Shown here: positions 21,940 through 64,000 of the stretch, piece by piece | How positions within the stretch are numbered: position 1 is the stretch's first letter | How the letters are laid out: the number at the start of each line of letters is the position of its first letter | NCBI GenBank assembly: GCA_047495785.1 | Contig: JBLDXI010000064.1 | Location: forward strand, 744,001-808,000 | Source of the DNA: Lepidodermella squamata | Lineage: Eukaryota; Animalia; Gastrotricha | Reading direction: 5' to 3' | DNA: 64,000 bases | The notes under the pieces: generated by a model | The model's database searches: none | Told to the model about the DNA's origin: nothing | The model's input: the letters and a program-made list of their open reading frames with translations, nothing else | Position numbers and translations under genes: made by a program

Positions 21940-23019
21940 TTAACAAGACGACATTGCTCGAATTGCTCCTCGCGACCTCAGCAAATCGACCACATCGGTA
22001 TTGTTTTTGCTGCTGTTGCAGATCGCTAAATCAAGAGCTGTTTCACGATTATCAAAAAGTCTGATATCCTTATTTGCACCTCTATCTAGCAACAGTCGAA
22101 CTGTTTCGACATGCCCATTCGAAGCAGTCTTCATCAACGCCGTATAGCCTTTGTTATACCTGGCCTCGATGGCAGCGTTGCGATCAAGTAACAGTCGTAC
22201 AACGTCGACTTTCCCATTCTGAAACGCCAACATCAACGCCGTATCGCCATCGTTATTCTTGGCCTCGATGGCAGCGTTGCGATCCAGCAACAGTCTAACA
22301 ACGTCGACGTACCCATTCTCAGCCGCCATCAACAACGCTGTCCAGCCAATGTTAGACTTGGCCTCGATGGCAGCCCCGCGATCTAGCAACAGCCGAGCTA
22401 CTTGGACTCGCCCATTCCTCGCTGCTAAAATCAACGCCGTCCAGCCATTATAATTATTCTTGGCCTCGATTGCAGCGTTGCGATCCAACAACAGCCGAAC
22501 TACTTCGACGTGCCCATTCTCAGCCGCAATCATCAACGCCGTCTTGCCATTGATGAATTCCTTGGCAGCGTTGCGATCAAGCAACAGTCGTACAACGTCG
22601 ACTTTCCCATTCTCAGCCGCCAACAACAACGCCGTATCACCATAGTTATTCTTGGCCTCGGTGGCAGCGTTGCGATCTAGCAGTAGTCGAACTACTTCGA
22701 AATGCCCATTAATAGCCGCCCACATCAACACCGTCCAGCCAAAATAATCCTCCTTGGAATTGACATCAGCTCCTCGATCGACGAACAGCTGAGCAATTTG
22801 CATTCGCTGGTCGGACTGCATCGGCATGCACGCAACGCTGTGCAGCAGGCTGCAATTTATGGTAGTCCAAGGAGCGCAGTGAATCTCCCTTGGGTCGCGC
22901 CAGTTCGGGTCGAATTCGCCGCCAGTGGATTCGTCGATCTCCGCAACGAGTTGCCGCACCTGCGCCACGTCGGCAGTGTCATGTGTCACATTCCACAACT
23001 GCTCGTACACTTCGCGGAC
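21940..23019 (-). CDS. Terminal ankyrin-array exon, unit 1 (N-cap, 7 internal repeats, C-cap)
   Basis: TALxxAAxxGxVEVVRLLLDRNAAIEAK repeats; no ATG; phase-0 acceptor tttag|GTC CGC GAA GTG. Confidence 0.85.
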   Translation of the reverse strand, partial: VREVYEQLWNVTHDTADVAQVRQLVAEIDESTGGEFDPNWRDPREIHCAPWTTINCSLLHSVACMPMQSDQRMQIAQLFVDRGADVNSKEDYFGWTVLMWAAINGHFEVVRLLLDRNAATEAKNNYGDTALLLAAENGKVDVVRLLLDRNAAKEFINGKTALMIAAENGHVEVVRLLLDRNAAIEAKNNYNGWTALILAARNGRVQVARLLLDRGAAIEAKSNIGWTALLMAAENGYVDVVRLLLDRNAAIEAKNNDGDTALMLAFQNGKVDVVRLLLDRNAAIEARYNKGYTALMKTASNGHVETVRLLLDRGANKDIRLFDNRETALDLAICNSSKNNTDVVDLLRSRGAIRAMSSC

Positions 23020-27763: not shown

Positions 27764-29994
27764 CTTTTGCTTCACAGCTACCAGTCGCAGACCAGCTGCC
27801 GTTTGCCTGGCATTGAATTGTACCCTGGCCAACGAGTTTGAAGCCCGGATTGCACACCAATGTCATCGTGGATAAGTACGCTGTGGATCTGTTGGAGCTA
27901 GCCAAATAGCCGTTACTCAGTACAGGAGCGGGGCCGCAGTCTACATCACACTTATGGAGAATCAGTTAAGAAAAGTTGTTATTACTTACTTAATAGATTA
28001 CACCTGCCATTTATCACCGGTCGAAATGGAGGTACGCACAGGGCGATCGAAACAGAAGACGAATAGTTGTACCCAGGGTTGCATTTCACGCTAACAGCCC
28101 CTCCTCTTTCCACTGCAGCTCCAGGCCTCAGAACTGCGCCAGTATCTTCCGAAGTTTCCGGGTCCACTCGGGTCACAAATCCCGCCGATATGCTTGGTAC
28201 AGGGCAAGACTGCTCGGGTGTGCTCGTCTGGCTGCGAACATCTGCGTTGTCGGAAATCCGATCGAGAACTTTGCAGACTCTGCTGTAGATGCCAGGAATA
28301 TATCCGGTGCAAAACGCATCGCCATTCGAAATTATGCCAAGCAGGTAAATCTGTCTCGATTGCAAACACATGAGAGGGCCGCCAGAATCTCCGAAGCAAA
28401 CGTCGCTGATGCCCTCGGCGGCTAAACACATCTTCGAGTCGGTGATGGTGACAGATTCCGAGCGTATGCGGGAATACTCCATCGAGCAATTTCGGTACGA
28501 TCGAACTCGAAGATCCAGCTTCCTCGGAGTCTCAGATATTATAGCTGAAATATCAGAAAGCATTTTGGCTATGTAACAACACCGGAATTTTCTATATACA
28601 GCATTCATTCGAAAAGGGCTGCATAAACGTCACACCTGCGATTAATCGACGCGAAAGTGTAACTTCGGCATGATTATAAACTAGCAAGAAAGACCATATG
28701 TGAATAATCCGTTTCCAAATCCGATCTCTTTTCTACCTTAGCTTGATCTAAATTTGATATGGGATAAATTTGTACGGGTTCGACCTTACGTAGACAGAAG
28801 GGTAGAGTTAGGACCCAGTCATGCGCATTGTCCATGGATCTTGTCTATCAGATCGATACTAGGTCATAAAAACTGCAATTTTGAACGAATACATAGTCTG
28901 CCTTTTTGATCTAATGCTCTAGGACTACCGGTTACCAGCTGGGCCATGTGGGCCTCAGAAAAATCTCTTCGGACCTGCCTAAGTTTCCCTTCCCTCAAAA
29001 CATCTTTCCGAGCTGGCCGGAATGATTCTTCAAAACCAATCTACACGATACAGCATACCAGTTCAGATTTCTTCATAAGTCTCTAAATTTTACACGTTTT
29101 CATGCACTAGGAAATTTGGGAGACTATTAAAAAATAAATAATATCTAAAAAGATAATTAATACAAAAATAAATAATAATAAATAATCTCTCTCTCTCTCT
29201 CTCCCTCTCTCTCAGCTCTTTCTTAAAAATAAATTACTGTGTACATTAGAACGTCATTTATGGTTGTTCTTTGTACACTATAAACTAAAGTACAGAGGAA
29301 TTTGAGCATACTGCTTTTAAAGTAACCCCAGCCAACTGCAACCGCTGAATCGCATCCGTCAATTGAATTCGCGGTGACAGAGTTGGCTCGGCACATGGTA
29401 GCCGCGTCAGGCAAACAAATCGGTTTGACTTGCTGCGAGAATCTGGGAACTGGGGTCGTCAGTCGCAGCAGAGCAAAATCAAAGTCGTGGAAATTCTGAC
29501 TGCCGTTGTAAAGTGGATGCACCAAAGTGGATGCCACGAGAGATTCGTAAGAGCCAGCCTCAAAACGAACATTGACGTTATGGCGACCAATCAGCGCTTT
29601 GATACTGTAAAAATGAAAAATATTACATCGAACAGGTAGTAAATGAACACTTCCACGAACAAAGTCGGAGTCTTGCCAGCATTCCAAACGCAATGAGCAG
29701 CTGTAATCAGCCATTGCTTCGAGATGAGAGAAGCTCCACAGTAAGACGCTGAAGTTTCGCCACTTTGGTAAATTTCAAGAAAAACCTAGAACAAGCATCC
29801 TGCTTGTTTAGCATTAATATTAAATGGAAGCGAACCAGCCACGGAAACTCGTGCTCTCCTGCTGGTTGACTGCCTGTTGATTTCGCCATTTGTGAAGGGT
29901 TCATGACACCGCATCCGATCGCATTATCTTGAGCAACGACTAATCCAGATACCAGGACAAGAAAGCCGATTATCAAAGCTGTTAGGTAACGCAT
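27764..29994 (-). CDS. Secreted trypsin-like (S1) protease plus CCP domains, unit 1; exons 29994-29836, 29785-29661, 29604-29312, 28544-27990, 27940-27764; third CCP exon not found
   Basis: Signal peptide, TAAHC, DFALL, GDSGGP, two Sushi-like modules; intron phases match unit 2. Confidence 0.8.
29186..29213. repeat. (CT)n microsatellite in protease intron 3
   Basis: Direct reading. Confidence 0.9.
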
Positions 29995-30430: not shown

Positions 30431-30559
30431 CTTAAATGTATCATTCATCACAGATCGCTTCGCTAATTAGATCCCAGTGAACCCTACACTAGAATTTACT
30501 AGAGATAGAACGGTATATATATATCCATATTGGCATTGTGGCCAAGGCTCGAAATCGTA

Positions 30560-30720
30560 GAGCGGAGTTTCTCTCATCTCGAAGCAATGGCTGATAACAG
30601 CTGCGCATTGCGTTTGGAATGCTGGAGAGACTCCGACTTTGTGCATGGAAGTGTTCATTTACCTCTTTGATGGTATATTTTTCATTGGCATAGTATCAAA
30701 GCGCTGATAGGTCGCCATAC
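30560..30720 (+). pseudogene. Inverted protease remnant (exon 2, intron, start of exon 3)
   Basis: SLISKQWLITAAHCVWNAGETPT, then IKALIGRH, on the + strand. Confidence 0.8.
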
Positions 30721-36766: not shown

Positions 36767-39700
36767 TCAACAAGACGACTTTGCTCGACTTGCTCCTCTC
36801 GACCTCAGCAAATCGGCCACATCGGTTTTGTTTATGCAAATCGCCAAATCAAGAGCTGTTTTGCCTTCTGTATTTGCGACATCCTTATTTGCGCCTCTAT
36901 CAAGCAACAGTCGAGCTACTTCGACTTCTCCACTCCGAGCCGCAATCATCAACGCCGTCCAGCCATCGTTATCCTTGGCCTCGATGGCAGCGTTGCGATC
37001 CAGCAGCAGTCGAACAGCTTCGACTTGCCCATTATAAGCCGCATGTATCAACGCCGTCCAGCCACTGTTATCCTTGGCCTCGATGGCAGCGTTGCGATCC
37101 AGCAACAGTCTAACTACTTCGACTCCCCCATACCGAGCCGCATGTATCAACGCCGTCCAGCCACTGTTATCCCTGGCCTCGATGGCAGCGTTGCGATCCA
37201 GCAACAGTCTAACTACTTTGACTTGCCCATTCAAAGCCGCATAGATCAACGCCGTCATGCCATTGTTATCCTTGGCCTCGATGGCAGCGTTGCGATCCAG
37301 CAACAGTCGAGCTACTTCGACTTGCCCATACAAAGCCGCAAGCATCAACGCTGTCGTGTTATCTTTATCCCTGGCCTCGGTCGTAACGTTGCGATCCAGC
37401 AACAGTCGAGCTACTTCTAATCGGCCATTCCGAGCAGCAGCCATCAACGCCGTCATGCCATCGTTATTCTTGGCCTCAATAGCAGCCCCGCGATCAAGCA
37501 GCAGTCGAGCTACTTCGACTTGCCCCCAACTAGCCGCAAACATCAACGCTGTCTTGTTATTGTAATTTTCCTTTAAATTCACATCGGCTCCACGATCGAC
37601 AAACAGCTGAGCGATCTGCAATCGCTGGTCGGATCGTGTCCAATTGCACGTAACACTGTGCAGCAGGGTGCCATTTGTCACATAATTCCAATTACCACAG
37701 TAAGTCGTATTTGGGTTGCGCCAGTTCGGCTCGAATTTGCCGCCTGTGGCTTCGTCGATCTCCGCAACGAGTTGCCGCACCTGCGCCACGTCGGCAGTGT
37801 TAAATGTCACATTCCACAACTGTTCGTACACTTCACGGACCTAAATTTAAAAAGACATTAGAAAAATGACGCAATAGAAAATAGATAAAAAAGACTGCGT
37901 AAATAATCCACTACATATTTAGCATACTTATTAATAATTACTAGCATAACAGACGCCCTGGTATCTATCGAAAATCGAAAAACTCGGAAAGGCTATGCAG
38001 GCGACAACGCCACACGAGATGCGAACAATGGTCAGCGAGGCGAACGTTAAGGTTAGCACGCATGCTCCCGTTAGGTCCCGCTACTTCTCTCACTGATATG
38101 CATGTGCATATCCTTCCGCGCCAAACGAAATTTGTTAAATCGGTATTGCGGCATAAAAACTGCTTTTGATTGACCATCCATTTCATTGTTTTAAACTAAT
38201 AATCACCACTAAAGAAAAGGGAACAACACGGCGAAAGGCGGCTAATGTAGACAATTCAGCCAATTAAAGTAGTAAGACAATTGCTAAGTAAGGCACTTGG
38301 TTTCAATAAAATCTCGAGAAATCGATTGAGATACGGCCTGAAAACTGAAAATTATAATGAGCTACTATTCACTCATCATTGGCTTGTATCAGATAGATCT
38401 CCTCAGCTTCAATGAATTCATCGTGTTCTCCTACAACACATTCACATCTTTGGCAGAGCTTTGGATTTGATTTACATTGTAGTCCGGCTTTGCAGGGTCA
38501 AAGTCCATTTTATTCATCACATGTGTTTTTATCGTTTATATAATGTGCCACTGGTGGTGCGGTCGTGAGGTGGCGAGGTGGTATTTTTTTGTACTCTTGC
38601 CTCACTGTTGTCAAATGATTTACCCCATTTATGCACAATAATAATCGCGCCTTGCCGTATGTGTACCATAAAAGTCCGCCCCACATTCATACTGACCTGA
38701 GCTATCGCAAATGATAATGGGCTTTTATAATCAAAACAACGCAAGTCGCGTCTTCTAATTACCCCTGATGTGACACAAAAAGCAGTTGCGACGACAGGAA
38801 AATACGATATATATGATATAAAATGGGTAAACTGTGTGTTTTCGTTTTGTAAAATGCCCGCTGCTTACAGTTTTGAGGTGAGCGTTGACTTGGACTCGAT
38901 AAAGCACCGTTTGGAGCGGATGCCAGCTTCGATTACTGATGTGCAGATTCGTACTCGTAGAGCGCGAGCTGAATTGGCGCAGACTCTTGCTTTGAAGACT
39001 CTACCTTCTACATGGCCATTTTCGCAGATAATGAATGGGGCCATTATGAAATCGGCCAAATTAACCATCGAGTATGATGACATTGGGGTTGTGGAAATCG
39101 AAGTACCCAGCGAAAAGCCAGCTAAATCTAGGGAAAGCGCAAACAATCGTGCTAAAAGGTTATAGAAATTGTCAAGTTATCGAATTTTATTAAATATTTA
39201 TTACTCTAGTCTCGTGATTCTGGGATTGCGTTACGGAATTAACGCCAGCAAGTTGCTAGCAATGCGTCGTTCCATTGGTTTCGAGTCAGTGTCAAAAGAT
39301 TTATTCTATAAAGTTAGGAACGAGCTGGCTGTTTTGCACCCTATAAGCACGATAAGCGACGGAAAGGCGGCTTTCCGATCGGTATTTTCGCTTGCCAGTA
39401 CTTGGGCCCGTAAAGGTGAGTTGAAACCGTCGGTCACTAACGACATTCGACTCCAGGTATAAATAAATTAAAATTCGAGGTAGAATTGAAACTTTATAAG
39501 TGACTGTTTAAGGTGGATGGGATGGCGAGCCGGACGAATTACGCTGACCCCCTTGTCACCGCCTATGTCTGTGTGGCGAGCAGGAAAAGGAAAGCCGGGA
39601 TCGATAATGAAGACCAATTGGCTGTCTATAATGATAACGAGTCAGCGAGTAATTTTCGAGAATATTTACAACCCCCTGTCGACGAGCTTGTAAAACTGGT

Positions 39701-42700
39701 CGAGCAAGGCATAACAGTCGACGGAAAAAGCTACAGTTTCAGACTGCTGACCTGCTGTGATTACCCGGCGCTGGTAAAAATATTTGGCTGTGGTCATCAG
39801 TCGAGTGAAAATCGTTGTGTTATTTGCGAGATGAGCGTCTGAAACCCAACTTTGCCAGCTAAAAGACGCAAGTTCGATGAATATTCGGCCGAAATGGCTG
39901 GGAAGCTGGGGTGGTCGGAAGATTTCGGGCCTATGATTCGGCTAAGCGAGGACAAATTGCTGATAATACCGGACTTCTTCCATCTTCAAGTCAATATTGC
40001 GAAACCACTGATTACCCAGGTTAGCATAGCAAGCGGAAAACTCTTCGAAAAGACATTTCATCCGAAAAATAACTTTAGGTTCTCGGAAAGTTGAGAGCGT
40101 TCAGTCAACGCGAAGCAATCAAAAAAGTCATCGAATTCTTGAAGATTGGGTCGAATTACAAATCATCAGCGGCTTCTTCAAGACGGATCAAGCGAACTCC
40201 GAAAAACTCGAAGCTGTCTATTGACGTCCGCCGAACTTTGAAGGGGAAAGTCAAAGTCAGCATTAAAAATTCGAATCACTACGGCGTTGTTCAGGTAGAA
40301 TTGTGGTAGAGTGAAAATAAAACTTAATTTTGGATTTAAAATTTCAGGCATTCAAGCGATTTACTGAACATATGAGCCAAAATTCGTTGACTGATGCGTT
40401 TTTCTTGCCAAAAAATTGGCAGAGAAAGAAAGTTTTCGGAAAAGTGAAGTCATCTGCCCGAATCAAAGAAAACGACTTTCTTACTTCTTTAGCCGGTCTT
40501 CGGAAGCTTTGCATCGCATCATGTGCCGCGTTTGACGATATCAAGGAAAATCGGAAAAAAGGAAAGGGCAAGTTCTTCATGCCGCGTTATGCATCGCTCT
40601 GGAAGACGCATGTTGGTCCTGTCACGTCATACGCACATCTCCTTTCGAGCCACACATACGAGCTGTTGAAACGAAATATTAATCTGGCCGCTTTGTCCGC
40701 TGAAAGCATCGAACTACTCATCAAAGAGCTGCGCGCAACAGTTAGCAGTCAAACTTCTAATTTCTGGCCGTTGTCTTCTCAGCTCATGAGAATTCAGAAC
40801 ATGAAAGACAATCTGAAAATTTGATACTTCAATTTTGTCAGCTTTACTTCTCATTTCAAGTTTTAATTTTTAAAAGTAAAATTCGAAAATGTAGAAAGAA
40901 TGTTTTTTATTCAGCCTCTACTCTTGAACTCATCATCATCAGATAACACGGCAAAATATCATCTTTTCGTGTACACATACTCATCTCGAGCTCGATCGAA
41001 ATGCAATTCATATTTATCTTGTGCGGACCAGACGAAAGAAAAAAGCCCGGCTCGGCAGAGCTCATCGAGTTTCGAAATTTGCCGGCAGATTGCGTTTTGG
41101 CTTCTGCCAAGTTCAGCATCAAGGTTTTTATCGGACAGAGTAATCCGCATCCAGAATTTTAATAAGCTTTTGGGAGCAGTCGCCAATTTACCGCGTTTCG
41201 TGTAGAAGGCGAACACATGTCGCAATCGATTCCGGTCGCTAAAGGTCCACTCAACGCGTGAATTCGCGGCATGAACTATATAAATTCGGACTATTTAGGA
41301 CTCTCAGTGTCAAGTATTTCCAGATACTAACCTTTGTCAAACCGCTTTGACACCGCCCTGATGTAGTTCCAAGAGCCATAACTTGCCGTAGAAACCGAAG
41401 AGTCGAGCGTTGTATCGCTGATTTCGATGGGCTCGATTTGCTCGGCTTGATGCGCGCCTGCTTGTTCCTGCTGTCCAAATTCCTCATGAAGAAACGATTC
41501 ATCGCCTTCATTTTCCGATAAACCGGTTTCAGACTGCTGATTATTTTTCGATTTGGCGAACATTGATCGAATATCGGCCTGTTTTTCAAAGCGATTGTGC
41601 TGTTGTTGCTGATGATGAGCAGCTCTGCGCTCACTCCTGCGTTGCCTTTTTCGCCGATTGCGTGATCGCGATTTCGCAGTTTCACTCATTTTATTCAGAT
41701 GAATTTCGCAAATAGCTCGAAAAACGAATGGCTTTACGACTGATAAAAATAACAAGTGAACGACTGCACGACCTCACCACCGCACCACCAGCGCGCATAG
41801 CTAAACATAAGACTACTACACACATGATATATAGCAATAATAATTGCACATGAATCATCTAGGTCACTCTGCAAAACCCGGACTTGTATGTAATTTGATT
41901 TACCGCTTAAAACACGGGCCTCCTTCAATTAATCAAGATCAATCGTTGTCCCACGCTAGTACGGGACTAAATCAATCAAATCAAATCATGAAATAGGGAA
42001 CCTTAAGACCATTAAATTAAGACCTTGAGGCCATTAAATTCGTTTAGCGCCTGAATACCGTATTTTATTGAATAGTATCTCGGGTTATCATTTTTTCTGA
42101 ACACGAAAAGTAGTAAAAATATCGGGTAATTATTTGAGGGGGCTTTTGTTTAAGGCAGGCTATTATTTATTCTAAAACGTGAAATCATCACTTCAACCGA
42201 CATTTTTAGTCATCAGCTTGAATATACTCCTCTTTCCTCTTTGGCGCAGTAATTAAGCTTGAATCACCGTAGTTACCGTCCTCGATTTCGCAGTTTCTCT
42301 TCTCTACGCCCCAATGTTTTCTTCTGGCACGCTAGCCACCTCTCCCATTCTTTCCTTGAGCTGATCACACGAGACACTAGACCTATGTGGTATGTGGCTA
42401 TTTACCTCTGGACCCAATATTGGATGCATTTTGGGCCTATTTTTGTTTTCGGAGACAGCTTTTTGCAAAGCTTCGAGCGACTGCGAAGTGAATTTGACGG
42501 AACAGCCCAATTTGCACTTGCATTTTGTCAGCTGAGCTACGGTTTCGAATAACCAACCCTGTTTACTTCAAACTAATTCCTCTCTAACGTGCGTAACTCC
42601 CAATCTCAATCGTTTGGTCTCTTCAACGAACCAGCGGTTCTGTCGATTTGGACGTATAGGGATTACATTCCAGAAATCTTTTTGATCAGCTTTACGAAGT

Positions 42701-44980
42701 ATTTCATCTTTCAACGTGTACTCGTTTTCGCGACTGAAAGCCCACTCTCCCTGCTACAACAATGTCGACTAATGGCTTGCAGTATTCGCCAGTCACATCG
42801 AAAATCGTCGAAAAACATGTAACATCTGCGGCGAGGCGCCTCGAAATCACATACTGCTGATCATAGAAATGTACCATTTGCTAACTGTTCATAACAATTT
42901 GCAATTTGCAATTGACCGGAATAGATGCTTCACACCGGAGCTATTTGCCACAATCATTTCGGAAACTCGAATAAGCAAATGAAGCAAAGTGCGAAGAGAA
43001 AATTTCGCAAACAGTGGCGCTTCGCTCTTAGCAGCAGTCTTCCGTTTGGCATAATAATCTAGATATGTTGACAATTACTGGAATGAGGCTGGAAGATCTC
43101 GTGTTCTTTTTACTCTGATTTCACTGATTTCACATTCCACTATTGTAACACTATGTCGACTTAACCTACGACAAGTTTCATTTAGTGAAAAACTTACAGG
43201 TCTTCGCTGACTCGAGACGCAGGAACCAGGCTGGGACCAGGTTGCGTTCAAGAGGCACGATACGGCAGCATTTCCTCGGAGCTCGAAATTCGGGTTGCAT
43301 GATATGGATCGAGTGGCTCCGACGCTCGTCAGACCAGGAGATACACCGCCATTTTGTATCGTAGGCGGCTGTCCACAAACTTTATACGGTAATTTGTTAG
43401 AAGAATCAACAGTGAGTGGAAAATGAGTCACCTGCTGTTTCACAGCTCCCAGCTGCAGACCATGTGCCGTTTGCTTGGCACTGACTTGTTCCCAGGCCAA
43501 TGACTTTGAAGCCTGGATTGCAGACCAACGTCATTGTGGACAAGTACGCTGTCGATCTGTTGGAGCTCGTCAAATAGCCGTTACTTATTACAGGGGCGGG
43601 GCCGCAGTCTTCATCATACTTGTGGAGAATCAGTTTAGAAGAGTTGCTATTACTTACTTAACGGGTTACACCTGCCATTTATCAGCGGTCGAAATGGAGG
43701 TACGCACAGGGCGATCGAAACAGAAGACGAATAGTTGTACCCAGGGTTGCATTTCACGCTAACAGCCCCTCCTCTTTCCACTGCAGCTCCAGGCCTCAGA
43801 ACTGCGCCAGTATCTTCTGATGTTTTAGGATCCACTCGGGTCACAAATCCCGCCGACACGTTAGGCACGGGGCAAGACTGCTCCGGAGTACTCACGGTAG
43901 TCTGGCTTCGAACATCTGTGTTGTCGGAAATCCAATCGAGAACCTTGCAGACTCTGCTGTAGATGCCAGGAGTGTATCCGTTGCATGAATCATCGCCATT
44001 CGAAATAATGCCTAGTAGGTAAATCTGTCTCGATTTCAAACACATGAGAGGGCCTCCAGAATCCCCGAAACAGACGTCGCTGTCGTCGGCGGCAAAGCAC
44101 ATCTTCGAATCTGTGATGGTGACCGCGTCAGAGCGGCCTCGCGAATATTCCATTGAGCAGTTTCGGTACGATCGAACTTGAAGATCCAGCTTCCTCGGGA
44201 TCTCTGATAATCTGGCTAGAATACAAGAGACAGATTAGAAAAACGTAGAACGGGGCTGGAATGATGTCAAATTGACAAAACATACTGTATGCAAAGTGTC
44301 CCCAGCCAACGGCAACTGCTGAATCGCATCCGTCGATCGAATATGCAGTGACAGAGTTGGCCCGGCACATGGTTGCTGCGTCGGGCAAACAAATCGGTTT
44401 GATCTGCTGCGAGAATCTGGTAACTGGGGTCGTCAGGCGCAGAAGAGCGAAATCAAAGTCGTAGAAATTCTGACTCCCTTTGTAAAGCGGATGCACTAAT
44501 GGAGGCAGCGACACGAGAGATTCGTAAGAGCCCGTCTCAGACCGGAAACTGATATTGTGGCGACCTAGTAGGGCTTTGATCCTAGGCACAGATAAGAGAT
44601 TGGACCATCAAACAGGGCAAAACAACGGGAAAATCTTACAAAATCGGAGTTTCTCCGGCATCCCAAACACAATGCGCAGCTGTAATCAGCCATTGCCTCG
44701 AGATGAGAGAAGCTCCGCAGTACGAAGCTGATGTTTCACCGTTTTTGTACATTTCAAGAAAGACCTATGGCGACATCCTGTTTGTGTTAAATTGCATTAA
44801 CATTGTATTGAAACAAACCAGCCATGGGTAGTCGTTTGGTCCTGCTGGATGGCTGCCAGGGCCTCGCGATTTCGCCATAGCCGTGGGGTTTACAGCACCA
44901 CATTCGGCATTGTCTTGAGCAAAGACTACTCCGGATACCAGCCCAAGGAAGGCAATTATCCTAGCTGTAACAAGGTGCAT
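36767..44980 (-). CDS. Predicted signal peptide-trypsin-CCPx3-ankyrin array protein, unit 2 (~857 aa); exons 44980-44819, 44764-44640, 44581-44286, 44215-43658, 43608-43432, 43379-43198, 37840-36767
   Basis: All six introns GT-AG with compatible phases; total 2574 nt, open; catalytic H/D/S intact; the last splice across 5.4 kb is inferred. Confidence 0.7.
38854..40824 (+). pseudogene. RAG1/Transib-like DDE transposase (~583 codons); exons 38854-39158, 39210-39456, 39513-40019, 40079-40294, 40348-40824; one in-frame TGA at 39840
   Basis: Ordered motifs VDGM, CCDYP, CVIC, DFFH, YAHLLSSH, SAESIE resemble RAG1 core CDGM, GYDEK, CTLC, DALH, YFHKTLAH, SEGNE. Confidence 0.65.
40959..41689 (-). CDS. 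Unknown 224-aa protein, convergent partner of the transposase; exons 41689-41332, 41275-40959
   Basis: Phase-1 intron joins two ORFs in frame; basic NLS-like N-terminus, acidic linker, helical C-terminal domain (EWTFSDRNRL). Confidence 0.6.
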
Positions 44981-50903: not shown

Positions 50904-53900
50904 TTGAAATTGTATCGAACCGGCAATAGGGCCCTGTACGTTAAAAAACAGAAGCAAGCAATCTCTGAGCATTTATCATTTTTCGACGACGAATGTCAAA
51001 CCAAACGCGAATTAATTAGAAAATCCAGGAAATTAGCTCTTAGACATCCTTCAAATCCGCTATACAAAGCTGATATGGACAGACACGAAGTAGAATATAG
51101 ACAGTTACTCCGCTCGAAAAAAGAACAGCATGAAGGTAGACTGCAAGCGGAGGCCGTAGAATTTGCCGAATTAATTGAGACACACCCAGCCGACTTTTTC
51201 AAACTAGCAAAAGAACTAGATCGCCTGAAGAGCATTGAAACCAACGTCGAGATGCCTGATGCCAGCGAAATAATTAGCTTTTTCAGTCAGCTTTTCACCG
51301 CGTCAACAACGGGGCCGGCTAGCCCTACGTCTCCAACAGCTGCGGCACGGGCAACGAACGACCCACATGACCTAGCTCTCGTAAAACCAGTATCAGTAGT
51401 AGAAATTGAATTAATTGTAGCTAAAGCTAAATCCAGTTCTAGTGCGGGTATAGACCAGATTGACTACGAATGTCTGAAATTAGACGGCTGTAAGCGAGGA
51501 CTATATCCCTTCCTAGCAGTTTTATACAGGGTGTTTCAGAACTCGCGCACTATATGAATAGCATGCGGCAAATGCGCGCGCATTGTTATGCGCTTATACT
51601 ATTATACGCGTATACTATTTTACCTATAAATGTACTACACACTACTGTAGTCAGCGTATAAAATATGCGTAATACATAAATGTACAGCATACATAATAGC
51701 ACTGCCGCACTTTTTTTCTGGCGGAAACCTTCGAGCCTCGATAAATTTGAGCCGAGTTTCATTAAATATCTTTTTTATTTCGAGGATGATGTCATGTTTT
51801 TCTGTAACGTGCTGATAGATTGGACTCTGAAGCGAGAGGATTCGAAACAATTTCTCAATTTCCGCGGCTGGATATTTCAGAAAATGATGATTTCTGAGAA
51901 AATTCTGATTTTACTTGATGTTGAATTCGTTGAAAAATCTATCATTGATTAGTCTCCTGCCTTTGCATCATTATTTTTTTCACGTTGCGTGAATACAAGA
52001 CTTCGACTGCACAAGCTTAGCAAAAATGACGTAGTTTTAACCACTGGCATGAGTTCTACATCGAGTAAAGAACGAAAATCAAGATTTCAGGTTCATAACG
52101 TCGAATAAAGGCAGCGATTCCATTTCGTGGATAACTAATCAAAATTGTCACGAAATGACAGCCAAGAAATCTAGGACAAAATGATGGACAGTAAAGAACA
52201 ACAAACTCATGGCTAGAATTTTCATGATCATCCGAAAATCCGAGAAAAAGTGAAAAATTGACGTTTTCCAGACTTTAAGCTACGGCATCTCCGAAAGACC
52301 GAGGGTGACAATTACATTTTTTCATATCACAAGACAGCCAAAGATGTCCTCTACCAGGCTGGTTGGTCGCGCAAAAAGTCTATCCACAGGGTTCGCAAGG
52401 AATCGCATGTCAAATGTCACAAAAATCGACGTAGTTAGGCCGTTTTCAGCCGCAAACGGGTCATCTTTGCGACCATCCCTCTTGAGAGCCCGTGGATGGA
52501 TTTTTTATTTCTTGATATCGTTGGAAAGCCCAAGAACTGGTCTACAAGGCTGGTTGGTCGCGCAAAAAGTCTATCCACAGGGTTAGTGAGGAATTGCATG
52601 TCAAATGTCACGAAAAACGTCGTGGAGAGGCTGTTTAAGGTAACTTCAATGTTTTTGCGTCGATTATTATGCGAGTGGTAAACGAAATTTTCCCGTGGAA
52701 GCGACTGAGTTTCTGCTTACAAATTTTAGCTCACGGAAATGTTTAAACTCAATCAGAGTGTTGCAACATCACATTTTCTCACGACTTTCTTCACTTCTTC
52801 TCAATTTTTACTGCTCTTTTCAAGAGTGAATGATCGTGAAATAAAATTCATGGAATTAAACAACAGCAACGGATTAAAAATCACATCATCTGGAATAATT
52901 TTCATCGTATTTGTATTGCAAACCCGAAATTTATTCATAGCCGCATTAAAAGCCTGTCCTGTTAGAGGTTTCTTCATTGAGAAATCGGCAAATTTCCAGA
53001 TATTTTGCAAGAGCAAGTCTTATTGCCTAGCGATATCCCTATTAATGCAGCAGCGTTACGGTACATACGAGTTCGATTTGCGCATTTTATAATGCCCGCA
53101 TACCGCTTGCACGCCATATGGGAAGTATAACGCCAACTACATAGCATATACGCATTACCGTTTGCGCTAGCCGCGCCTTACACTATGCATCAATATAAAC
53201 ATAAGTATGTGCGCGGAATGTATGCGCAGCGCGCGCACGTTTACTCTGGATACCATGGCAACCATTTGCCGCAGGTTATTCTAGTGCGCAAGTTCTGAAA
53301 CACCCTGTATACTAAGATCCTGGAAACGGGAGAATACCCAGAATGCTGGCGCAAAGCATTGCTGATCCCCATCTATAAGAAAAACAGCCGACTAGATCCT
53401 AAAAATTATAGACCTATCTCACTTCTGTCCGTATTTGCCAAAATATTTTCAAGTATCCTAGAGAAACGCTTGCGAGAATGGTGCACGGCTAAAAATATAT
53501 TGCGACCCGAACAGTTCGGATTCACGCCAAAAATAGGCACAGTAGATGCGTGTACTCTATTCTACGCCATAGTGGCTTTTTACCTCACTAGGAAAAAGAA
53601 AGTATACGCTGCCTTCGTAGATTTTTCAAATGCGTTCGACAAAATTAGCCGTGCTCTCTTGATGAAGAAGCTCAGAAAAATAGGACTGCCTTCGTCCTTT
53701 ATTGAGGTGATTAGGAAGAAAAAATGTGATGAGTGATAAGGAGAAAAATCTATATAAACACATCTTCAAAAATTTACCAGAAGATGTTGAAAAATTAGGC
53801 GGAAAAGAAATTTTTAACGCTACATCTAAATTTGAGGGCCTAGCCCTGCTTGAGAGATGGTACGAGAAATGGGTCGAAAATGATAAATTTTCGACGGCCT

Positions 53901-54840: not shown

Positions 54841-55242
54841 CGAAAATAACCCCCATAGGTTGTTACAACAACATAGAGCTTGTGAGGAATAGTGTTATGG
54901 AGACCACACTCATGGATAAAGCTGTTAACGCGAAATGGAAAATCAATAATTTGTGGATGAGGCAAAAAATCAGCAAAAAATGGTTATTTACAATTTATCA
55001 CGCCGCCTTTTTCAGCCACTCGCCATTACGCTCATAAAAAATGCCAGTGCCAGGTAGTAGGCGCCAGTTTTCTCCGGTTTGGATGCCGATTTTACCAATT
55101 TTGAACACATTTTCAGAATCCTCAGCTCATTTCCAATCGTACCCATGTAACAAAAGTTTCTAAATAAACGCAAAAAGTTACATTTCCAACTTGGTAAACA
55201 TTCCAGAACAGAAATGTGATTAGTCTGCGTGATTCATTGGTT

Positions 55243-56322
55243 TCAACACGTTGACGTCGCTCGACTTGCTCCTCTCGACCTCAGCAAATCGGCCACGTCG
55301 GCTTTCTTTGCGCAAATCGCGCGATCAAGAGCTGTTGTACCTAATGTTGCAGTGACGTCCTTATTTGCACCTCTATCCAGCAACAGTCGAACTACTTCGA
55401 CTTGCCCAAGAAGAGCTGCATACATCAACGCCGTCGAGCCACCGTTATCCTTGGCCTCGATGTCAGCGTTGCGATCCAGCAACAGTCGAACTACTCCGAC
55501 TGTCCCGTTCGAAACCGCCCCGATCAACGACGTCCAGCCAATGTTATCCTTGGCCTCGATGGCAGCGTTGCGATCCAGCAACAGTCGAGCTACTTCGACT
55601 TGCCCATACCTAGCCGCCTGCATCAACGCCGTCCTGCCGAAGCCATCCTTCGCCTCGATGTTAGCTCGGCGATCCAGCAACAGTCGAGCTACTTCGACTT
55701 GCCCATACAAAGCCGCCCACATCAACGCCGTCGAGCCATCATCAGCCTTCGCCTCGACGTCAGCGTTGCGATCCAGCAACAGTCGAGCTACTTCGACTTG
55801 CCCAAACAAAGCCGCATGCATCAACGACCTCCAGCCAATGTTAGTCTTGGCCTCGATGGCAGCGTTGCGATCCAGCAACAGTCGAGCTACTTCGACGCGC
55901 CCATTCTGAGCCGCATTCATCAACGCCGTCGAGCCATCTTTAGCCTTGGCCTCGACGTCAGCGTTGCGATCCAGCAACAGTCGAACTACTTCGACTTGCC
56001 CACTCTCAGCCGCCCACATCAACGCCGTCCTGTCCCTGGAATCTTCCTTTAAATTCACGTCGGCTCCACGATCGACAAACAGCTGAGCGACCTGCATTTG
56101 CTGGTCGGATCGTGTCTGATTGCATGTAAATGTAACACTATGCAGCAGGCTGCCATTAGTCACATGATACCAACCACCACAGTTAATCGCCTCTGGGTTG
56201 CGCCAGTTCGGGTCGAATTTGCCGCCTGTGGATTCGTCGATCTCCGCAACGAGTTGCCGCACCTGCGCCACGTCGGCGGTGTTTCTTGTCACATTCCACA
56301 ACTGCACGTACACCTCGCGGAC
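55243..56322 (-). CDS. Terminal ankyrin-array exon, unit 3
   Basis: Same N-cap/7-repeat/C-cap layout; phase-0 acceptor tttag|GTC CGC GAG GTG. Confidence 0.85.
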   Translation of the reverse strand, partial: VREVYVQLWNVTRNTADVAQVRQLVAEIDESTGGKFDPNWRNPEAINCGGWYHVTNGSLLHSVTFTCNQTRSDQQMQVAQLFVDRGADVNLKEDSRDRTALMWAAESGQVEVVRLLLDRNADVEAKAKDGSTALMNAAQNGRVEVARLLLDRNAAIEAKTNIGWRSLMHAALFGQVEVARLLLDRNADVEAKADDGSTALMWAALYGQVEVARLLLDRRANIEAKDGFGRTALMQAARYGQVEVARLLLDRNAAIEAKDNIGWTSLIGAVSNGTVGVVRLLLDRNADIEAKDNGGSTALMYAALLGQVEVVRLLLDRGANKDVTATLGTTALDRAICAKKADVADLLRSRGASRATSTC

Positions 56323-57133
56323 CTAAATGTAACAAAGAACAAAAAGAAATTGTAATCCCTATAGAGCCTGGCTATTTGAGAAATCCTAAAGCTGAAGGCG
56401 CACTATTTCTTTGCAGGCAAGCAAAGAAGTAACTATAACTAACGACATTATAGGTTCGATTTGGAAGAGAAGGAAGGTTCTGGCACAAAACAACAATAAC
56501 ATATCGTTAGGGACGTTGAATAACCCGGATTTAGGCTTGTTTACTTCCGTTTCAAGGTCATGGGTGACAAGTAAGAAGCGGCTTTTTAACCTTTCAGTTC
56601 CTATTCTCGGCCGGTCCGGCCATTTTTGTTTTCAAGTTGATAATTTTTTATGTTTACCGAGACGTGTGATCTTGAGCAGCTGTGACTTTTACTAAAATTT
56701 TGTGCGGAATCCGAATATGAAGTTTGTTTTGACATATCTGTCACCGTTGAGGAGTGGCAAGCGATTTGTCAAAGGGTGGTAAACGTCAAATTTTCAAAAT
56801 GGCGTAACATCATTATTTCTTTGAGTATTAAGGTTGATAAGTCAACTTATTTTGACATATTTAGCAGTCATTAGCAGCATAGCAGCATAGCATTTTCTTT
56901 ATTTTATCTTTTCCTTCATTAATTGATCAACAATAACATAACAATAACAATTGAGTTCAAGTACAGAAACGAAGAAACAAAAATGAGAAGGAAAAATGAT
57001 AAAATAAAATTCACTCCGGTGTACCCAATTTGCCGGGCGTGATGTAAATTTTGTTCACGCCAAGCGAACCGAGTGTCGGAGGAGGACCGGTAGCAAGCTA
57101 CCTATCCTGATCGTCCACCTCGAAAATTCATCC

Positions 57134-60100
57134 TTAATCTGATATTTCAATTTTACCCAAATAACTATGAATTTTTTCTCTCCAAGTAGTTCTATCCTGG
57201 GCCAGGGCGTCGGCCTCCTCAAAACTGTTAATCCCTATTTTGTTCAGATGTTTTTTGATGCAATCAATCCACCTTAATTTTGGTCGCCCTCGAGGTCTAC
57301 TCCAAGTGTCATCCGGCGGCTGCCAGTACCGCATCTGGCTTGCCAGCCTTACGGGGTCCATGCGAGCGACGTGCCCGTACCAGCGAAGTTGCCGCCTAGC
57401 AATTTTGAATGTAAATTGTTCTGAACCACACAAATTTCTAATGACCTCATTGCGAATCCTGTCCCTAAGTGTTACTCCGCATATCTTACGCAAATAACGC
57501 ATATAGCCTACGTCGAGTCGCCTCGCATCCTCAGAAGTTATAGTCCAACTTTCGCTGCCATGCATGATAGTCGCATCCACAACGCCCTTTAAACATTTCA
57601 TTTTTTCTTTAGTCGGGACAGATCGATTGCCAAAAATATATTTCCGCATAGCGCCAAACGCTTTGTTGCCTTTTTCTAAACGAGTCCTTACATCAGCCTC
57701 ATTTACCCTCATAAATTTAGTTTTTGGAACATTAATTTTCAAGCCCAAGTGTCCACATGCTTCAACAAAAATATCAATAATTAGCTGCATTTCCCCCCAA
57801 TCCTGCGATAATAAAGCAGTATCATCCGCGAATGCTAGTAACATTGAAGAAACCTTTTTTCGGCAGAAAAGTACTTTTTTCCGCAGAAAATTTCTCTTTT
57901 CGGCAGAGAGTACTCTTTTCGGCAGAGAATACTTTTTTCAGCAGAAAATTCTACTCTTTTCCGCAGGAAATTTTTGTTTGTCGATTAAAATTAAATTTTT
58001 TTACCATAATGATCACCGTTCATTCCTGAGTCGTCCTATGTGTTCATTTCGATGCTATCACCAAAGGAAATCCAGGCGAAAGCTACGCGTCGGCTGGCGA
58101 TGAACTTCAAATCGTTTGGCCACTTTTACTACAGCCTGTCGAACATTTACCTCGTCAACTTCTCGGCGCATGCGGCTTGCACGTGCATCTTGGGGTCGAA
58201 GAAAACAATCTGCGTCCACCAAGTCATGGTTCGCCATTTGGCCAAGTTTCCGGACAGTGAAGTACCGAAGCACTGTCGTGTTAGCAGCCTGGGTGGTGTA
58301 ACCGGAGGTCGACCCAGGAAGATGTCGAAAGCACTCAACTTCGATCTGAAGGACCGTCCGAAGAGACCTATCCGGCAATCAGCTTTGAAAGCAAAAGAAA
58401 ACACATTCGATGACGATGAAGATGATACTCCGATTCGCTCCAAACGAAAAGCGCCAGCAAGAATAATCGAATCTGACAACGAAGAAAATCTTGAACCGAA
58501 TTCAGAGTCGAAGTCATCTGAAGAGAGTGTTGAAGTCGCCTTCCCTCGAAATGGCGAGAAGTTCGATCGCTATACAGTTGTCGACGTTCAAGGGGACGGA
58601 AATTGCGTTTACCGATCGTTTGCCCATCTTTTGAACGGTTCAGAGGAAGACCACTTGGAGTTTCGCAACAAAACAGTGACTTGGTTGATGGACAACGAGG
58701 AATCAACGGAGCCATTTGTTGCTAGGCTGTATAAGAAGGATGCGAAACGCACATTTGACTTGCACGATTTCACGAAGTCGACCACAGCAAACTTGAAATA
58801 TCCCCGATCAAAAGCTCTTCAGTTGGTCGCAAACGACAATACCACGTCTTTTACACGGGTGTTCACTATATGGCTTTGAGTCGCTAATTATTCGTGTCGT
58901 GACGTCGAAATAATGAACATGACAAAATAAACACATAGGACGACTCAGGAATGAACGGTGATCATTATGGTAAAAAAAATTTAATTTTAATCGACAAACA
59001 AAAATTTTCTGCGGAAAAGAGTAGAATTTTCTGCTGAAAAAAGTATTCTCTGCCGAAAAGAGTACTCTCTGCCGAAAAGAGAAATTTTCTGCGGAAAAAG
59101 TACTTTTCTGCCGAAAAAAGTATGCCTTTAACTTCGTCGGTTAAAGGCATACCTGTCTTTTCTAATTTTACTCTCTTGCAGACTACATTAAATACCGCTA
59201 TAAATAACAGGGGCGACAATGGGCAGCCTTGTCTCAGTCCCTTGGTCACCCGGAAGGGTTTCGCGCTTACGCCATTTACTCGGACAGTAGCAATGCTATC
59301 CCTGTATAATGCCTTGATGTTATCTATAAGATCGCGAGAAACCCCTAGGTCTTCGAGCGCTTTCCACACTTGTTCGCGGTCGACAAAATCATAAGCTTTT
59401 TCCAGGTCCATAAATGTAATAAAAATACTCCTGTTGAATTCAATAATTTTTTCCATGATTTGCCTTAATATAAAAGTACAATCACCCGTTCCCTTATTTT
59501 GCATAAAACCATGTTGAAATTCTTCTAATTTTATATTTATTTCATCCCGAAGCCGCTTTTCAAGAATTCGCGCGTAACATTTTGCAATGATACTAATTAG
59601 ACTTATGCCGCGGTAATTATTGCACATATTTTAATCTCCTTTTTTGGCACTGGGATCAGAATTAAATTCAGAAAATCATCAGGAACGCGTTTTTCAGCCC
59701 ATATTTTATTGAAGAGAAACTCTAGCCATTCAATTTTCGAATTTTGTAGCGCATTAAGCATTTCTAATCTAATTTCATCGAGACCGGGTGATTTTCTTAA
59801 TTTTTCCTTTGAAATTGCGAGCTGAATCTCGTCGCGTGTTATCGGTTTCATGACGCGCGTTTCACATTTACTAGTAAATTCTAAATTTTCATTCAATTTA
59901 TTTATTTCCCCAGCTAATATTTCCACCCCATCTACAACTCCCATAAAATAACGTCTCCATCTGTCTGCTACTTGAATTTTGTCTGATAAAATTCTCCCAT
60001 TTTCGTGTTCGATTACAATTTTATAGTCGTGCTTGTCCGACCCTTTAGTTAGAGAAGCTATTAGATGCCAAAAGAACGACTTTGCTTCCTGAGGCTTATC

Positions 60101-60510
60101 TCTGAGCGCGTAGAACTTATTTCCAAGTTCCTTTTTGACTTCGTCCTTAGCCTGTCTTATAACCTTCTTTTCGCTGTTGCGCTCCTCAACGTAATCGTCC
60201 CACAGTTTATTCAAATCTGCGCTAGTAGCAACGCCGAGTTCATCTAACCGTTTCCTTTCCTTCGCGAATAGTTTAAATTTCCGCTTTTTTGCCGCTGCTT
60301 TTCTCCTAGTTTTATTGCCCCACCACCTAGTTCGCTTACCATTTTTCCTAACTCGTTTTTTCCCGCAGATTTTTGCACTTTCCGCCTCCAGCGTCTTCAG
60401 TTTTAGCCACACATCCTCAGCTGAAGTTGTCCTATCTACGTCACTTAATTTCTGGTCCATCACCTGCTTCAATTTATTAGAAAAAGTTGGCTGTTCTAGC
60501 CGCTCATGAG
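57134..60510 (-). mobile_element. RTE-like LINE ORF2, frameshifted and interrupted
   Basis: KSPGLDEI, NYRGISL, DLEKAYD, GLRQGCPLSPLLF, FADD, LRWYGHVARM. Confidence 0.9.
57855..59120 (+). mobile_element. Internally deleted Mutator-like element with ~190-bp TIRs; ORF 58040-58879 has SWIM-like and OTU-like motifs
   Basis: Near-perfect long inverted repeats; CTC..C.H, GRPRK, GDGNCVYRS. Confidence 0.75.
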
Positions 60511-61706
60511 CCGTGCGCCATGTCTCTTCAACTATATCTTCAACTTGTCATTTTTGCGGTCTAGATCGAATCTCATCCGTACACATAATAACAAATGATC
60601 AGGGCCCAAACAAGCATCTGGTCCATCTGGTCCATCTGGTCCAAACAAGCCCAAACAAGCATCTGCTATCGTTTCGCAGGCGAAAACGTTTTTTCTTAAG
60701 TATTGTCGCCCAAGTCCGAAAGCGACCACATCGCGCTCTGGTCGACCAGGATGCGACGGGCCTACAATCTCTCCTATCAAACACCAATGTCGGGCTTCGG
60801 CTCGTAGGTGTCGACCGAGGTACGGTGGGCTCCAAATCGAGGACAGTGGACGCGCGCGCGCGCATTGTCCCGCCGTGCTCTAGCTCACGCGCGCTCTAGC
60901 TGATTTAATTTGATTTGCCGCCTAAATCACGGGCATCCTTCAATCAATCAAGATGAATCGTTGTCCCACTTGTACGTTGTCCCACATGTAAATCAAATCA
61001 AATCATGGAATAGGGAACCTTGAGACCGCTTTTTCCACGTTGAACTGCTTACCACAGTGATGCGCAAACTCTTGAGGCTTGTGCAGTCGGCGATTTGGTA
61101 TAATAGCTCTGGTTGAGTAAACCATAGATCTAGGCGCCTTAATTTCATGGGGCAATTTTTGCACTTGTACAATTATTTCAGCAGTGTGGCCGGTTAGGGA
61201 CATTTCCGGCCGCCAATATTGTCGGTAATTAAAAAAGTTTGCGCTTCAACTGCGTTCAACTAGCTGAATCACATCACGCCATTCTTCTGTTGCTGATACA
61301 ATGTTCTCTCGACGCTTGAATTCGTGTTTAGGTTTTCAGCTATTTCACAGGAGACTATTGGCGATGCTCGCGTTAATATGAATCAGAAATTCACTGCAAT
61401 TTTTAGGACTCAGTTTTACACGTTTTACACGTGCGCACGGGCGGAAGTTTAAAAGCCGCAGGAAAAAATCATAACATTTCAAAGAAATTTATAGACAAGC
61501 CTGCCATTTTTACACTATTTTCAGCTCGAATTGTTAAGAAATACCGTTAGCTAAAGCTGGCTTTGCTCGCATATTCAGTAATTTAGTTTTTAATTCAGCT
61601 GGCAAGTTGACTACTGGAAAATTCCATAGTTTAAGAGTTTCCATCACTGATAGCAATTGCAAAAGTGCTAGAGAATAAAGAAAATGTTATGTTATGTGTT
61701 ATGATA

Positions 61707-63364
61707 CAGGGTGTTTCAGAACTTGCGCAATAGAATAACCTGCGGCAAATGGTTGCCTTGGTATCCAGAGTAAACGTTCGCGCGCTGCGCATACATTCCG
61801 CGCACATATGTTTATATTCATGCATAGTATAAGGCGCGGCTAGCGCAAACGGTAATGCGTGTAATGCGTATATGCTATGTAGTTGGCGTTATACGTCCCA
61901 TATGGCGTGCAAGCGGTATGCGCGCATTATAACATGCGCAAATCGAACTCGTATATACCGTTACGCTGCTGCAGTAATGGGGATATCGCTAGGAAATAAG
62001 ACTTGCTCTTGCAAAATATCTGGAAATTAGCCGATTTCTCAATGAAGAAACCTCCAACAGGACAGGCTATGAATAAATTTCGAGTTTTCAATACCATTAT
62101 CATGAACATTATTCCAGATAATACGATTTTTACGCCGTTGCTGTTGTTTTATTCCTTGAATTTGATTTCACGTTCATTCACTTTTGAAAAGAGCAGTAAC
62201 AATTAAGAAGAACTGAGAAAAGTCGTGAGAAAAGGTAATGTTGCAACGCTCTGATTGAGTTTAAAAATTTCTGTGAACAGAAAATTTGAAAGCAAAAGCT
62301 TGTACGCTTCCACGGGAAAATGTCGTTTAACACTTGCAGAAGAATGGACGCAAAAACATTGACGTTACCTTAAACAGCCTCTCATCGACGAATTTTGTGA
62401 CATTTGACATGCGATTCCTTGCGAACACTGTGGATAGACTTTCGGCGCGACCAACCAGCCTGGTAGACCAGCTCTTGGGCTTTCCAACGATATCAAGAAA
62501 TCGAAAATCCATCCACGGGATCTCGAATGGGAGGGTCGCAAAGATGACCCGTTTGCGGCTGAAAACGGCGCAACTACGACGAATTTAGTGACATTTGACA
62601 TGCCATTCCTTACGAACCCGATGGATAGACTTTTTGCGCGACCAACCAGCCTTGTAGACCGGGTCCTTAGCTATCTCACGATACGAATAAATGCAATTGC
62701 TACCCATGGTTCTTTGGAGATGCAGTAAATTCGTAGACATTTCGAATAGTTATCCACGAAATTGAATTGCTGCGTTAGGTCGACGTAATGAACTGCAAAC
62801 CTTGATTATTTGTCTTTGTTCGATGTAGAACATTTGCAAGTGGTTTAAACTACATCATTTTTTATCAACTTGTGTAGTCGGGGCCTTGTATTCATGCAAC
62901 GTGAAAGAAATTCTGATGCAAAGGCAGGAGACTAATTAACCAACGATTTTTCGACAAATTCAACATCAAGTAAAATCAGAATTTTCTCAGAAATAATCAG
63001 TTTCTGAAATATCCAGCCACAGATATTGAGAAATTGTTTCTAAACCTCTCGCTTCAGAGTCCAATCAATCAGCATGTTTCAGGAAAACATGACATCATCC
63101 TCGAAATAAAAAAGATATTCAATGTAACTCGGCTCAAATTTATCGAGGCTCGAAACTCGAAAGTTTCCGCCAGAAAATAACTACGGCAGTGCTATTATGT
63201 ATGCTGTACATTTATGTATTACGCATATTTTATACGCAGACTACAGTATTGTGTAGTACATCTATAGGTAAAATAGTATACGCGTATAATTGTATAGGCG
63301 CATAACAATGCGCGCCCATTTGCCGCATGCTATTCATATAGTGCGCGAGTTCTGAAACACCCTG
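61707..63364. mobile_element. Non-autonomous Tc1/mariner-like element, copy 2 (inverted relative to copy 1)
   Basis: Same TIR and TA TSD; internal homology to 51527-53307. Confidence 0.9.
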
Positions 63365-64000
63365 TAGCTCTTGGATCCGTGAGCTCACCCTGAAAATATG
63401 ACCCAGGCACTTTTCTGACGGGGGTCTGACAGAGCCTCTTCTTAGTGTTCATGGGAATCACGTTGATCAAGTTGGCCACCACGAAACACACTTCTGCGTA
63501 AATAAATATACATACTGCATAATGTACATATATCCTTGCGCTTTTGTAGCACCTTACGAAGAAGAAATTTGACAGCGAAAAAATCTTGATAAGTGAGCAG
63601 AGCGGGCTACAATTTCTGGTTTTGTTGCTGAATTTTTACAGCTGAGGATAGCCTAAAGATTAATTCAAATCAAATAATTTTCACGACTTTGCGGTTGGAA
63701 CAGGAATAGATGCTTCACGGGGTTCATAAAACCGGAGCTATTTGCCACAATCATTTCGGAAACTCGAATATGCAAATGAAGCTAAGTGCGAAGAGACGTC
63801 ATCTCGGTACTGGAGTCGAAGCAAGCCAAGAAAGAAAAAGAAAAGGCGGATCATATGGTGGAAAAAATCCTTAACCAGGATCTGTTGGAAATCTCTGGCA
63901 TCCCAGAAACCAACTGGCGAGAAGAGGTGCGAAAACTTATCCCGCAAGAAATCACGAGCTGGATGATAAAAGAAAGAAAAGCGGACGGTACGATCATTAT

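Follow-up and report, generated by a model that had tools for sequence, protein, structure and literature searches.

Three exons in a 64-kb window of Lepidodermella squamata (the window being the whole 64,000-nucleotide stretch of DNA analysed) encode ankyrin arrays in which a uniform scaffold is combined with a few positions that differ from repeat to repeat and from copy to copy. Does this variation reflect a binding surface that is selected to change and, if so, what might that surface recognise? The sequence-only reading of the window had proposed a germline repertoire of binders under diversifying selection, varying at the positions randomised in DARPin libraries and loosely analogous to LRR-based immune receptors.

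Anatomy of the three ankyrin exons

The three exons are paralogous last exons on the minus strand (gene A, 21940-23019; gene B, 36767-37840, i.e., exon 7 of its gene model; gene C, 55243-56322) and are mutually 77-83% identical at the DNA level. Each follows a TTTAG acceptor in phase 0, with identical first codons at 23019, 37840 and 56322, and each ends with a stop codon. Seven internal repeats plus caps, at nearly equal length, had been reported for all three, and this description is exact in its coordinates, the exons comprising 360, 358 and 360 codons including the stop (359 codons plus stop in gene C). Repeat spacing is 33 residues throughout, the exceptions being two small in-frame indels in gene A (one 2-residue deletion and one 1-residue insertion). 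In gene C, the N-cap (56047-56322) consists of a helix pair, a variable loop (residues 42-56) and a degenerate repeat, with Cys48, Cys67 and three N-glycosylation sequons; the array itself (55351-56046) is built of 99-nt units whose position-6 codons start at 56028, 55929, 55830, 55731, 55632, 55533 and 55434; and the C-cap (55243-55350) carries Cys337 and the terminal Cys359. The N-cap measures ca. 90 residues in each ankyrin exon, every cap has two conserved cysteines, and 4-8 N-glycosylation sequons are present per exon. The first cap-cysteine loop (residues 42-56 of gene C, at 56155-56199, and its counterparts in the paralogues) is aromatic-rich and variable, with pN of 0.26-0.44 versus 0.06 for residues 1-41, and may enlarge the binding face.

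Pfam (Ank families at E 1e-60 or better), the predicted fold and a fold search all identify an ankyrin-repeat domain, i.e., 33-residue helix-turn-helix-hairpin repeats. An AlphaFold model of the gene C exon, made with a 15-sequence alignment, reached pLDDT 92.9 and pTM 0.90 (the fold from the single sequence was poor, pLDDT 67), and places helix 1 at repeat positions 7-14 and helix 2 at positions 17-25; the best PDB matches of this model in Foldseek are ankyrins and DARPins. The binding face was mapped from the secondary structure of the model together with published ankyrin geometry, and the cap disulfides are putative. Homologue searches with the ankyrin exon retrieved generic ankyrin proteins only (best 47% identity), the first ca. 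55 residues of the N-cap found no outside relative among 1.8 billion representatives, and an N-cap search in Atlas returned generic ankyrin look-alikes only.

Variability along the repeat

Across the 21 repeats, entropy amounts to 3.4 bits at position 10, 2.9 at position 3, 2.6 at positions 5 and 13, 2.5 at position 16, 2.4 at position 1, 1.9 at position 14 and 1.8 at position 2, and positions 8, 15 and 21-26 are invariant. All six-residue surface codes are distinct (21/21); besides the consensus Asn their commonest residues are Tyr and Trp, and Cys and Pro are absent. The framework VEVxRLLLDRNAAIEAK, described earlier as nearly constant, matches at no fewer than 14 of 16 residues in 16 of the 21 repeats; it is exact in five, and the tail of repeat 7 differs. 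Likewise, the positions listed as variable do vary, but the lists were incomplete, as position 10 also takes L, I and M, and positions 1 and 16 vary too. Within genes, internal repeats are 67-75% identical in amino acids and 79-83% in nucleotides. Judged on this percent identity and not on Psim, they show the likeness within the array that marks high-internal-conservation (HIC) arrays, although they do not reach the 85% applied to the Podospora set.

The original DARPin library randomises positions 2, 3, 5, 13, 14 and 33 (PMC8248824), and a second ankyrin library randomises 2, 3, 5, 10, 13 and 14, on the grounds that position 10 faces the binding surface and position 33 does not (PMC3308923). 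The six positions singled out by the sequence-only reading are exactly those of the second library, so both library sets could be used as a-priori classes; the agreement stops at position 33, which is constant here, and at position 16 (the turn after helix 1), which is variable here and randomised in neither library. Such placement is, however, not in itself unusual, contrary to what had been implied: in 37 unrelated ankyrin arrays from the homologue search, a set biased towards arrays resembling the query, the face shows a median difference of 0.85 versus 0.48 elsewhere, and the variability profiles agree with ours (Spearman 0.73). What sets A, B and C apart from the median of these arrays is their framework difference of 0.26; an equally uniform framework occurs in 9 of the 37, seven of which have a face difference of 0.68-0.79 or 0.49. 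The pattern of variable positions is thus generic to ankyrins and the DARPin match by itself partly circular, and since unrelated arrays vary at the same positions, the protein-level pattern does not suffice to infer selection.

Face codons change faster than neutral in genes B and C

Rates were estimated with a Goldman-Yang-type codon model (own code) with one synonymous rate across all site classes. Read within its limits (33 columns, scaled and not re-optimised branch lengths, NEB site calls, few indel-flanking codons masked), the site-model comparison of M2a with M1a on the 21 repeats gave LR 100.9 and omega 6.4 for 15% of sites, namely positions 3, 5, 10, 13 and 16; internal repeats 2-6 alone gave LR 61.1 with the same sites, and positions 2 and 14 of the gene C array were also selected in some subsets. 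M8 versus M8a gave LR 72.5 and omega 5.4, and LR 45-51 for gene pairs taken singly. For the a-priori classes, omega was 3.5-5.4 at the original DARPin six and 5.6-10.5 at the second-library six over three trees (ML, framework-only and star) and two frequency models. A tree-free measure points the same way, diversity at codon positions 1-2 of the face being 0.52-0.59 versus 0.19 at 15 four-fold sites (p 4e-4 and 5e-5).

Two artefacts that could have produced a high omega were considered and rejected. Recombination is the first: in neutral simulations that drew a fresh coalescent tree for every codon or for every five codons, only 0.4-1.6% of the runs (250 per setting) reached the observed ratio, and none of 48 fits gave an omega above 2.3, compared with the observed 3.5 and 4.7. 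The second is the synonymous rate itself. Because homogenisation could lower synonymous change inside the arrays, we used the dS of the caps and of the protease exons as yardsticks, and the excess remained: with paralogues compared at the same repeat index, the ratio of face dN to cap dS is 2.2-4.1 (Fisher p 0.003 to 6e-6), and it is 1.5-2.1 (p 0.03 and 2e-4) when the A and B protease and CCP exons supply the dS. Nor does a deeper local history explain the face rate, since the codons interleaved with the variable ones have a low synonymous diversity (0.15).

The repeat core is under purifying selection (pN 0.033 versus pS 0.254), and many non-core positions lie near omega 1. Taken per gene, omega is 10-15 in C (imprecise, because dS is small), 3.4-4.2 in B and 1.5-1.9 in A, which carries the weakest signal and is not significant by itself (M2a p 0.06). 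Every test run here supports the proposed diversifying selection on the concave face; it holds for genes B and C, and is not significant for gene A alone under M2a. We conclude that the data support a scaffold that is kept while concave-face residues change faster than neutral in genes B and C.

Six unrelated control arrays with available DNA (L001-L006) were put through the same test. Omega was 4.8 in L001, 3.8 in L002, ca. 6-6.5 in L004 and 2.0 in L005, and 1.4-1.5 and not significant in L003 and L006; as three of the six are positive and the others lower, the test can tell arrays apart, and the regime also occurs outside this genome. L001 is a PNP_UDP-NACHT-ANK protein, i.e., a fungal NLR layout, its value measured at the same six sites, and L002 has a NACHT-type neighbour. 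L004 (1501-2982) is a TAL-type ankyrin array on a metagenome contig, with a high face omega and no NACHT neighbour in view.

Exchange among repeats

Framework pS between genes for repeats 2-6 is practically the same for repeats of the same index (0.189) and of other indices (0.187), and is 0.164 within genes. Repeat 7 alone groups by index (support 100). Repeats often have their best partner at a different index of a different gene, and a run of 68 nt is identical in B4 and C5. Within the 99-nt unit the PHI test is weak (p 0.04 and 0.23). This pattern of similarity fits repeat exchange within and between genes (concerted evolution); array growth close in time to the gene duplication could also account for the lack of an index signal.

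Upstream exons and gene models

Upstream of the gene B array, on the same minus strand, lie six exons of a predicted secreted protease. Exon 1 (44819-44980) holds an ATG, a signal-peptide-like hydrophobic start (by eye and hydropathy) and the beginning of the protease; exon 2 (44640-44764) the trypsin catalytic His motif; exon 3 (44286-44581) the catalytic Asp region; and exon 4 (43658-44215) the catalytic Ser motif and the S1 Asp, followed by a CCP-like module with an insertion, which was called on its Cys pattern and has no Pfam match. Exons 5 (43432-43608) and 6 (43198-43379) each encode a Sushi/CCP module recognised by Pfam, and exon 6 ends in a phase-0 donor. Introns between exons 1 and 6 (44980-43198) measure 49-70 nt and have canonical phases; two of them (43609-43657 and 43380-43431) end in AAG acceptors. 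Joined to the ankyrin exon across an intron of 5357 nt, the model reads through 857 codons with zero internal stops. Several ORFs lie inside this long intron at 38520-41826, two of which gave no Pfam match.

The protease belongs to the trypsin family (S1A), with the His-Asp-Ser triad and the S1 Asp intact. The canonical R/K-IVGG activation site is missing, exon 1 having Arg or Lys followed by Gly/Ser-rich residues, and the IVGG N-terminus is absent from both proteases of the window (44819-44980 and 29836-29994), even though triad and S1 Asp are intact in both; activation may be unusual or absent. A homologue search with the trypsin exon gave a single weak match.

Gene A repeats this arrangement in exons 1-5 (27764-29994, minus strand), which encode a putative signal, trypsin and two CCP modules with an enlarged intron 3; A and B have kept much the same sequence in introns 1, 2 and 4 (44/49 in intron 4). 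No counterpart of exon 6 was found in gene A, and because it is missing, the last donor (phase 1) mismatches the phase-0 ankyrin acceptor. Gene A further has a Trp to Arg change near the protease C-terminus and LINE sequence in an intron; omega between the protease exons of A and B is 0.21. Gene A is probably in decay, which agrees with its weak selection signal, the alternative being another natural splice. Just upstream of it, at 30540-30718, lies an inverted, stop-containing partial copy of trypsin exons 2-3.

For gene C, no protease or CCP exon was found in the 7.7 kb between the ankyrin exon and the window end. Since its upstream exons are not in the window, the architecture of C is taken from B, and by this analogy it would have the same upstream exons. 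The gene C exon was found in none of the public RNA runs searched, and the reads placed from two DNA-like public runs included neither a gene C allele nor a splice joint.

Relatives of the exons and neighbouring elements

The same two public runs contain 22-24% of gene C words. At 80% likeness, 305 and 1001 contigs, respectively, fall on 54900-57200, introns and flanks included, and because introns and flanks are covered, both runs behave as DNA. Contig depth is heaped on caps and repeats, and short pieces between framework matches are, by eye, repeats with face residues absent from A, B and C. The contigs support, as a reading of sequence likeness, the presence of many paralogues in Lepidodermella squamata or close species, with no copy number implied. 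A family of few paralogues had been named as the outcome that would weaken the repertoire idea; DNA runs of the same or a close species contain many paralogous repeat pieces instead.

Other features of the window include a tandem cluster of ca. 12 rhodopsin-like GPCR genes at 1260-21500 (weak 7tm_1 match, conserved N-terminal motif), which are probably chemoreceptors. An element at 57854-59120 has terminal inverted repeats of ca. 200 bp built of 19-20-bp subrepeats and interrupts a LINE reverse transcriptase (57134-57844 and 58965-60472); the ORF inside it (58040-58879) shows SWIM-like and OTU-like motifs by eye, Pfam being blank, and the element is probably Mutator/foldback-like. A different element is present in two copies (61704-63366 and 51525-53310) that are ca. 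87% identical; its terminal inverted repeats measure 28 bp, and a stretch of ca. 190 bp is duplicated inside it.

What the variable face may recognise

We consider it fairly probable that the arrays are variable targeting domains on a secreted trypsin-CCPx3 protein that is directed at a foreign extracellular target. The ankyrin exon would be the part that varies and binds the target. Its 99-nt units would undergo unequal crossover or gene conversion, both inside a gene and from one paralogue to another, which would keep the scaffold uniform and reshuffle repeats, while positive selection would fix new residues in the hairpin (positions 3 and 5, more weakly 1 and 2), in helix 1 (10 and 13, more weakly 14) and in the turn between helices 1 and 2 (16), giving each gene a distinct concave surface. 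In gene B, the array would form the C-terminal end of the predicted secreted protein, bind a changing foreign target (putatively a molecule of a microbe, parasite, prey or host) and bring the protease to it. Splicing, secretion, proteolytic activity, binding, the foreignness of the target and the upstream exons of gene C are what we infer here. Against this interpretation we count the constant number of seven repeats in all three paralogues, unlike fungal NLR arrays, as well as the lack of significance of gene A alone, the weak PHI result, the missing activation N-terminus, the small number of codon columns (33), the absence of the exon from the RNA runs, which bears on the putative 5.4-kb splice, and the lack of a protease or CCP exon in the 7.7 kb of the window upstream of gene C.

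The selection could be just as real with a self or conspecific partner (gamete or mate recognition, allorecognition, specialisation of the paralogues on different endogenous substrates, processing of glue or cuticle), which we regard as unlikely. The argument against a self partner is indirect: a large family whose members show many different faces is usually one that recognises foreign targets. A fixed repeat number, on the other hand, suits a partner of constrained shape, the target is not readable from sequence, and allorecognition genes are known among fungal arrays of the same type (PMC13449251).

The ankyrin exon might instead be a stand-alone or alternatively attached cassette and the adjoining proteases mere neighbours, a view that is compatible with the selection result and that we rate as unlikely. 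The phase mismatch in gene A, the lack of upstream exons of gene C in the window and the transposon-filled introns of 4.7-7.7 kb before the ankyrin exons, versus 49-70 nt elsewhere, are all in its favour. Exon 6 of gene B, however, runs without a stop to a donor of matching phase, the order of protease then ankyrin occurs twice in the window, and no short signal exon common to the three ankyrin exons was found in the sequence upstream of them.

Ordinary ankyrin variation, i.e., a recent array whose surface drifts neutrally around a constrained core, with a circular match to DARPins, would agree with the variability of the 37 unrelated arrays, with the choice of DARPin positions from natural surface variability, with the many non-core positions near omega 1 and with gene A. 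It is improbable as a general account, given that four separate measures put the face codons above the neutral rate and that the interleaved codons argue against a deeper local history, and for genes B and C neutral drift is largely refuted by the rate tests. Barely credible, finally, is a programmed mutator (DGR-like adenine mutagenesis or somatic diversification) that writes the variable codons: many of these resemble AAT or AAG derivatives and at positions 3, 5, 13 and 14 the third base is kept more than expected under an omega 6-10 model (p 0.02-0.19 each), but this third-base deficit is mild and consistent with amino-acid preference, no template repeat was seen, and silent adenines are conserved in the units (GTA in 16/21 at position 19, third-base A in 19/21 at position 21), so that the adenine-specific variation of a diversity-generating retroelement target is not found.

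Returning to a variable targeting domain aimed at foreign molecules, we would tentatively suggest a germline system of extracellular ankyrin recognition, in which a large family of disulfide-capped cassettes, shuffled through exchange of repeats, diversified under selection and fused to secreted proteases, aims proteolysis at different foreign targets. Such a system could conceivably be a natural DARPin-protease repertoire in the role that LRR, lectin or Ig domains play elsewhere in animals. If this were true, ankyrins would be a further fold with which animals achieve variable recognition outside the cell, and the locus would point to an arms race in an unstudied lineage. The arrays also offer protein engineers a natural data set in which selection uses positions 10 and 16 and not 33, and their cysteine-bearing, putatively glycosylated caps may fit ankyrins for the extracellular space.

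Comparison with known systems

In VLRs and LRR repertoires, a variable concave solenoid face lies between cysteine-bearing caps, as here, but on an LRR fold and through somatic assembly of cassettes. The exons described here are complete in the germline; a VLR-like somatic assembly is rejected, as each exon is a complete open frame and no loose ankyrin units occur elsewhere in the window. Secreted trypsin-fold proteases that combine CCP modules with a recognition part are known from MASP, C1r and C1s, factor B and C2, and horseshoe crab factor C, and factor B and C2 likewise lack the usual activation N-terminus. These MASP/factor B-type proteases carry the protease C-terminally and recognise through CUB, lectin or partner proteins, whereas in gene B the protease is N-terminal and recognition would fall to ankyrins. 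Latrotoxins, which appear among the PDB matches, are also extracellular ankyrin arrays in an animal, but they match the generic repeats only, their arrays are far longer and divergent, and their pore-forming N-terminal domain is missing here. An open-access literature search for secreted animal ankyrin families and trypsin-CCP-ankyrin fusions found none, which is weak evidence.

With DARPins and designed libraries the arrays share a constant framework, a capped architecture and variation at positions 2, 3, 5, 13 and 14, and at position 10 of the second library (PMC8248824; PMC3308923). They differ in being natural and not designed, in having 7 instead of 2-3 internal repeats and a TAL instead of a TPLH motif, and in keeping position 33 constant while 16 varies strongly.

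Closer to the present exons than the LRR-based receptors invoked earlier, or than VLRs, are the ankyrin arrays of fungal NLRs (PMC4986451), and the exons would work like a fungal HIC-ankyrin sensor. In Podospora NLRs, conserved ankyrin repeats have five selected positions, nearly all on the concave face, and a polymorphic repeat number (PMC4986451; PMC13449251). Near-identical repeats, concerted evolution and five selected positions, almost all on the concave face (inner helix and hairpin), are common to both; the fungal proteins, however, are cytosolic STAND ATPases with polymorphic repeat number, whereas here an animal-type gene has 7 repeats in all copies. Membership in the NLR (STAND) class itself is rejected, as there is no NACHT or NB-ARC domain and gene B has trypsin and Sushi exons ahead of its array. 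Only the present arrays have cysteine-bearing caps with sequons, predicted secretion and (in gene B) a trypsin-CCP N-terminus. The evolutionary regime thus has a precedent, and its setting on a putative secreted protease is the new part.
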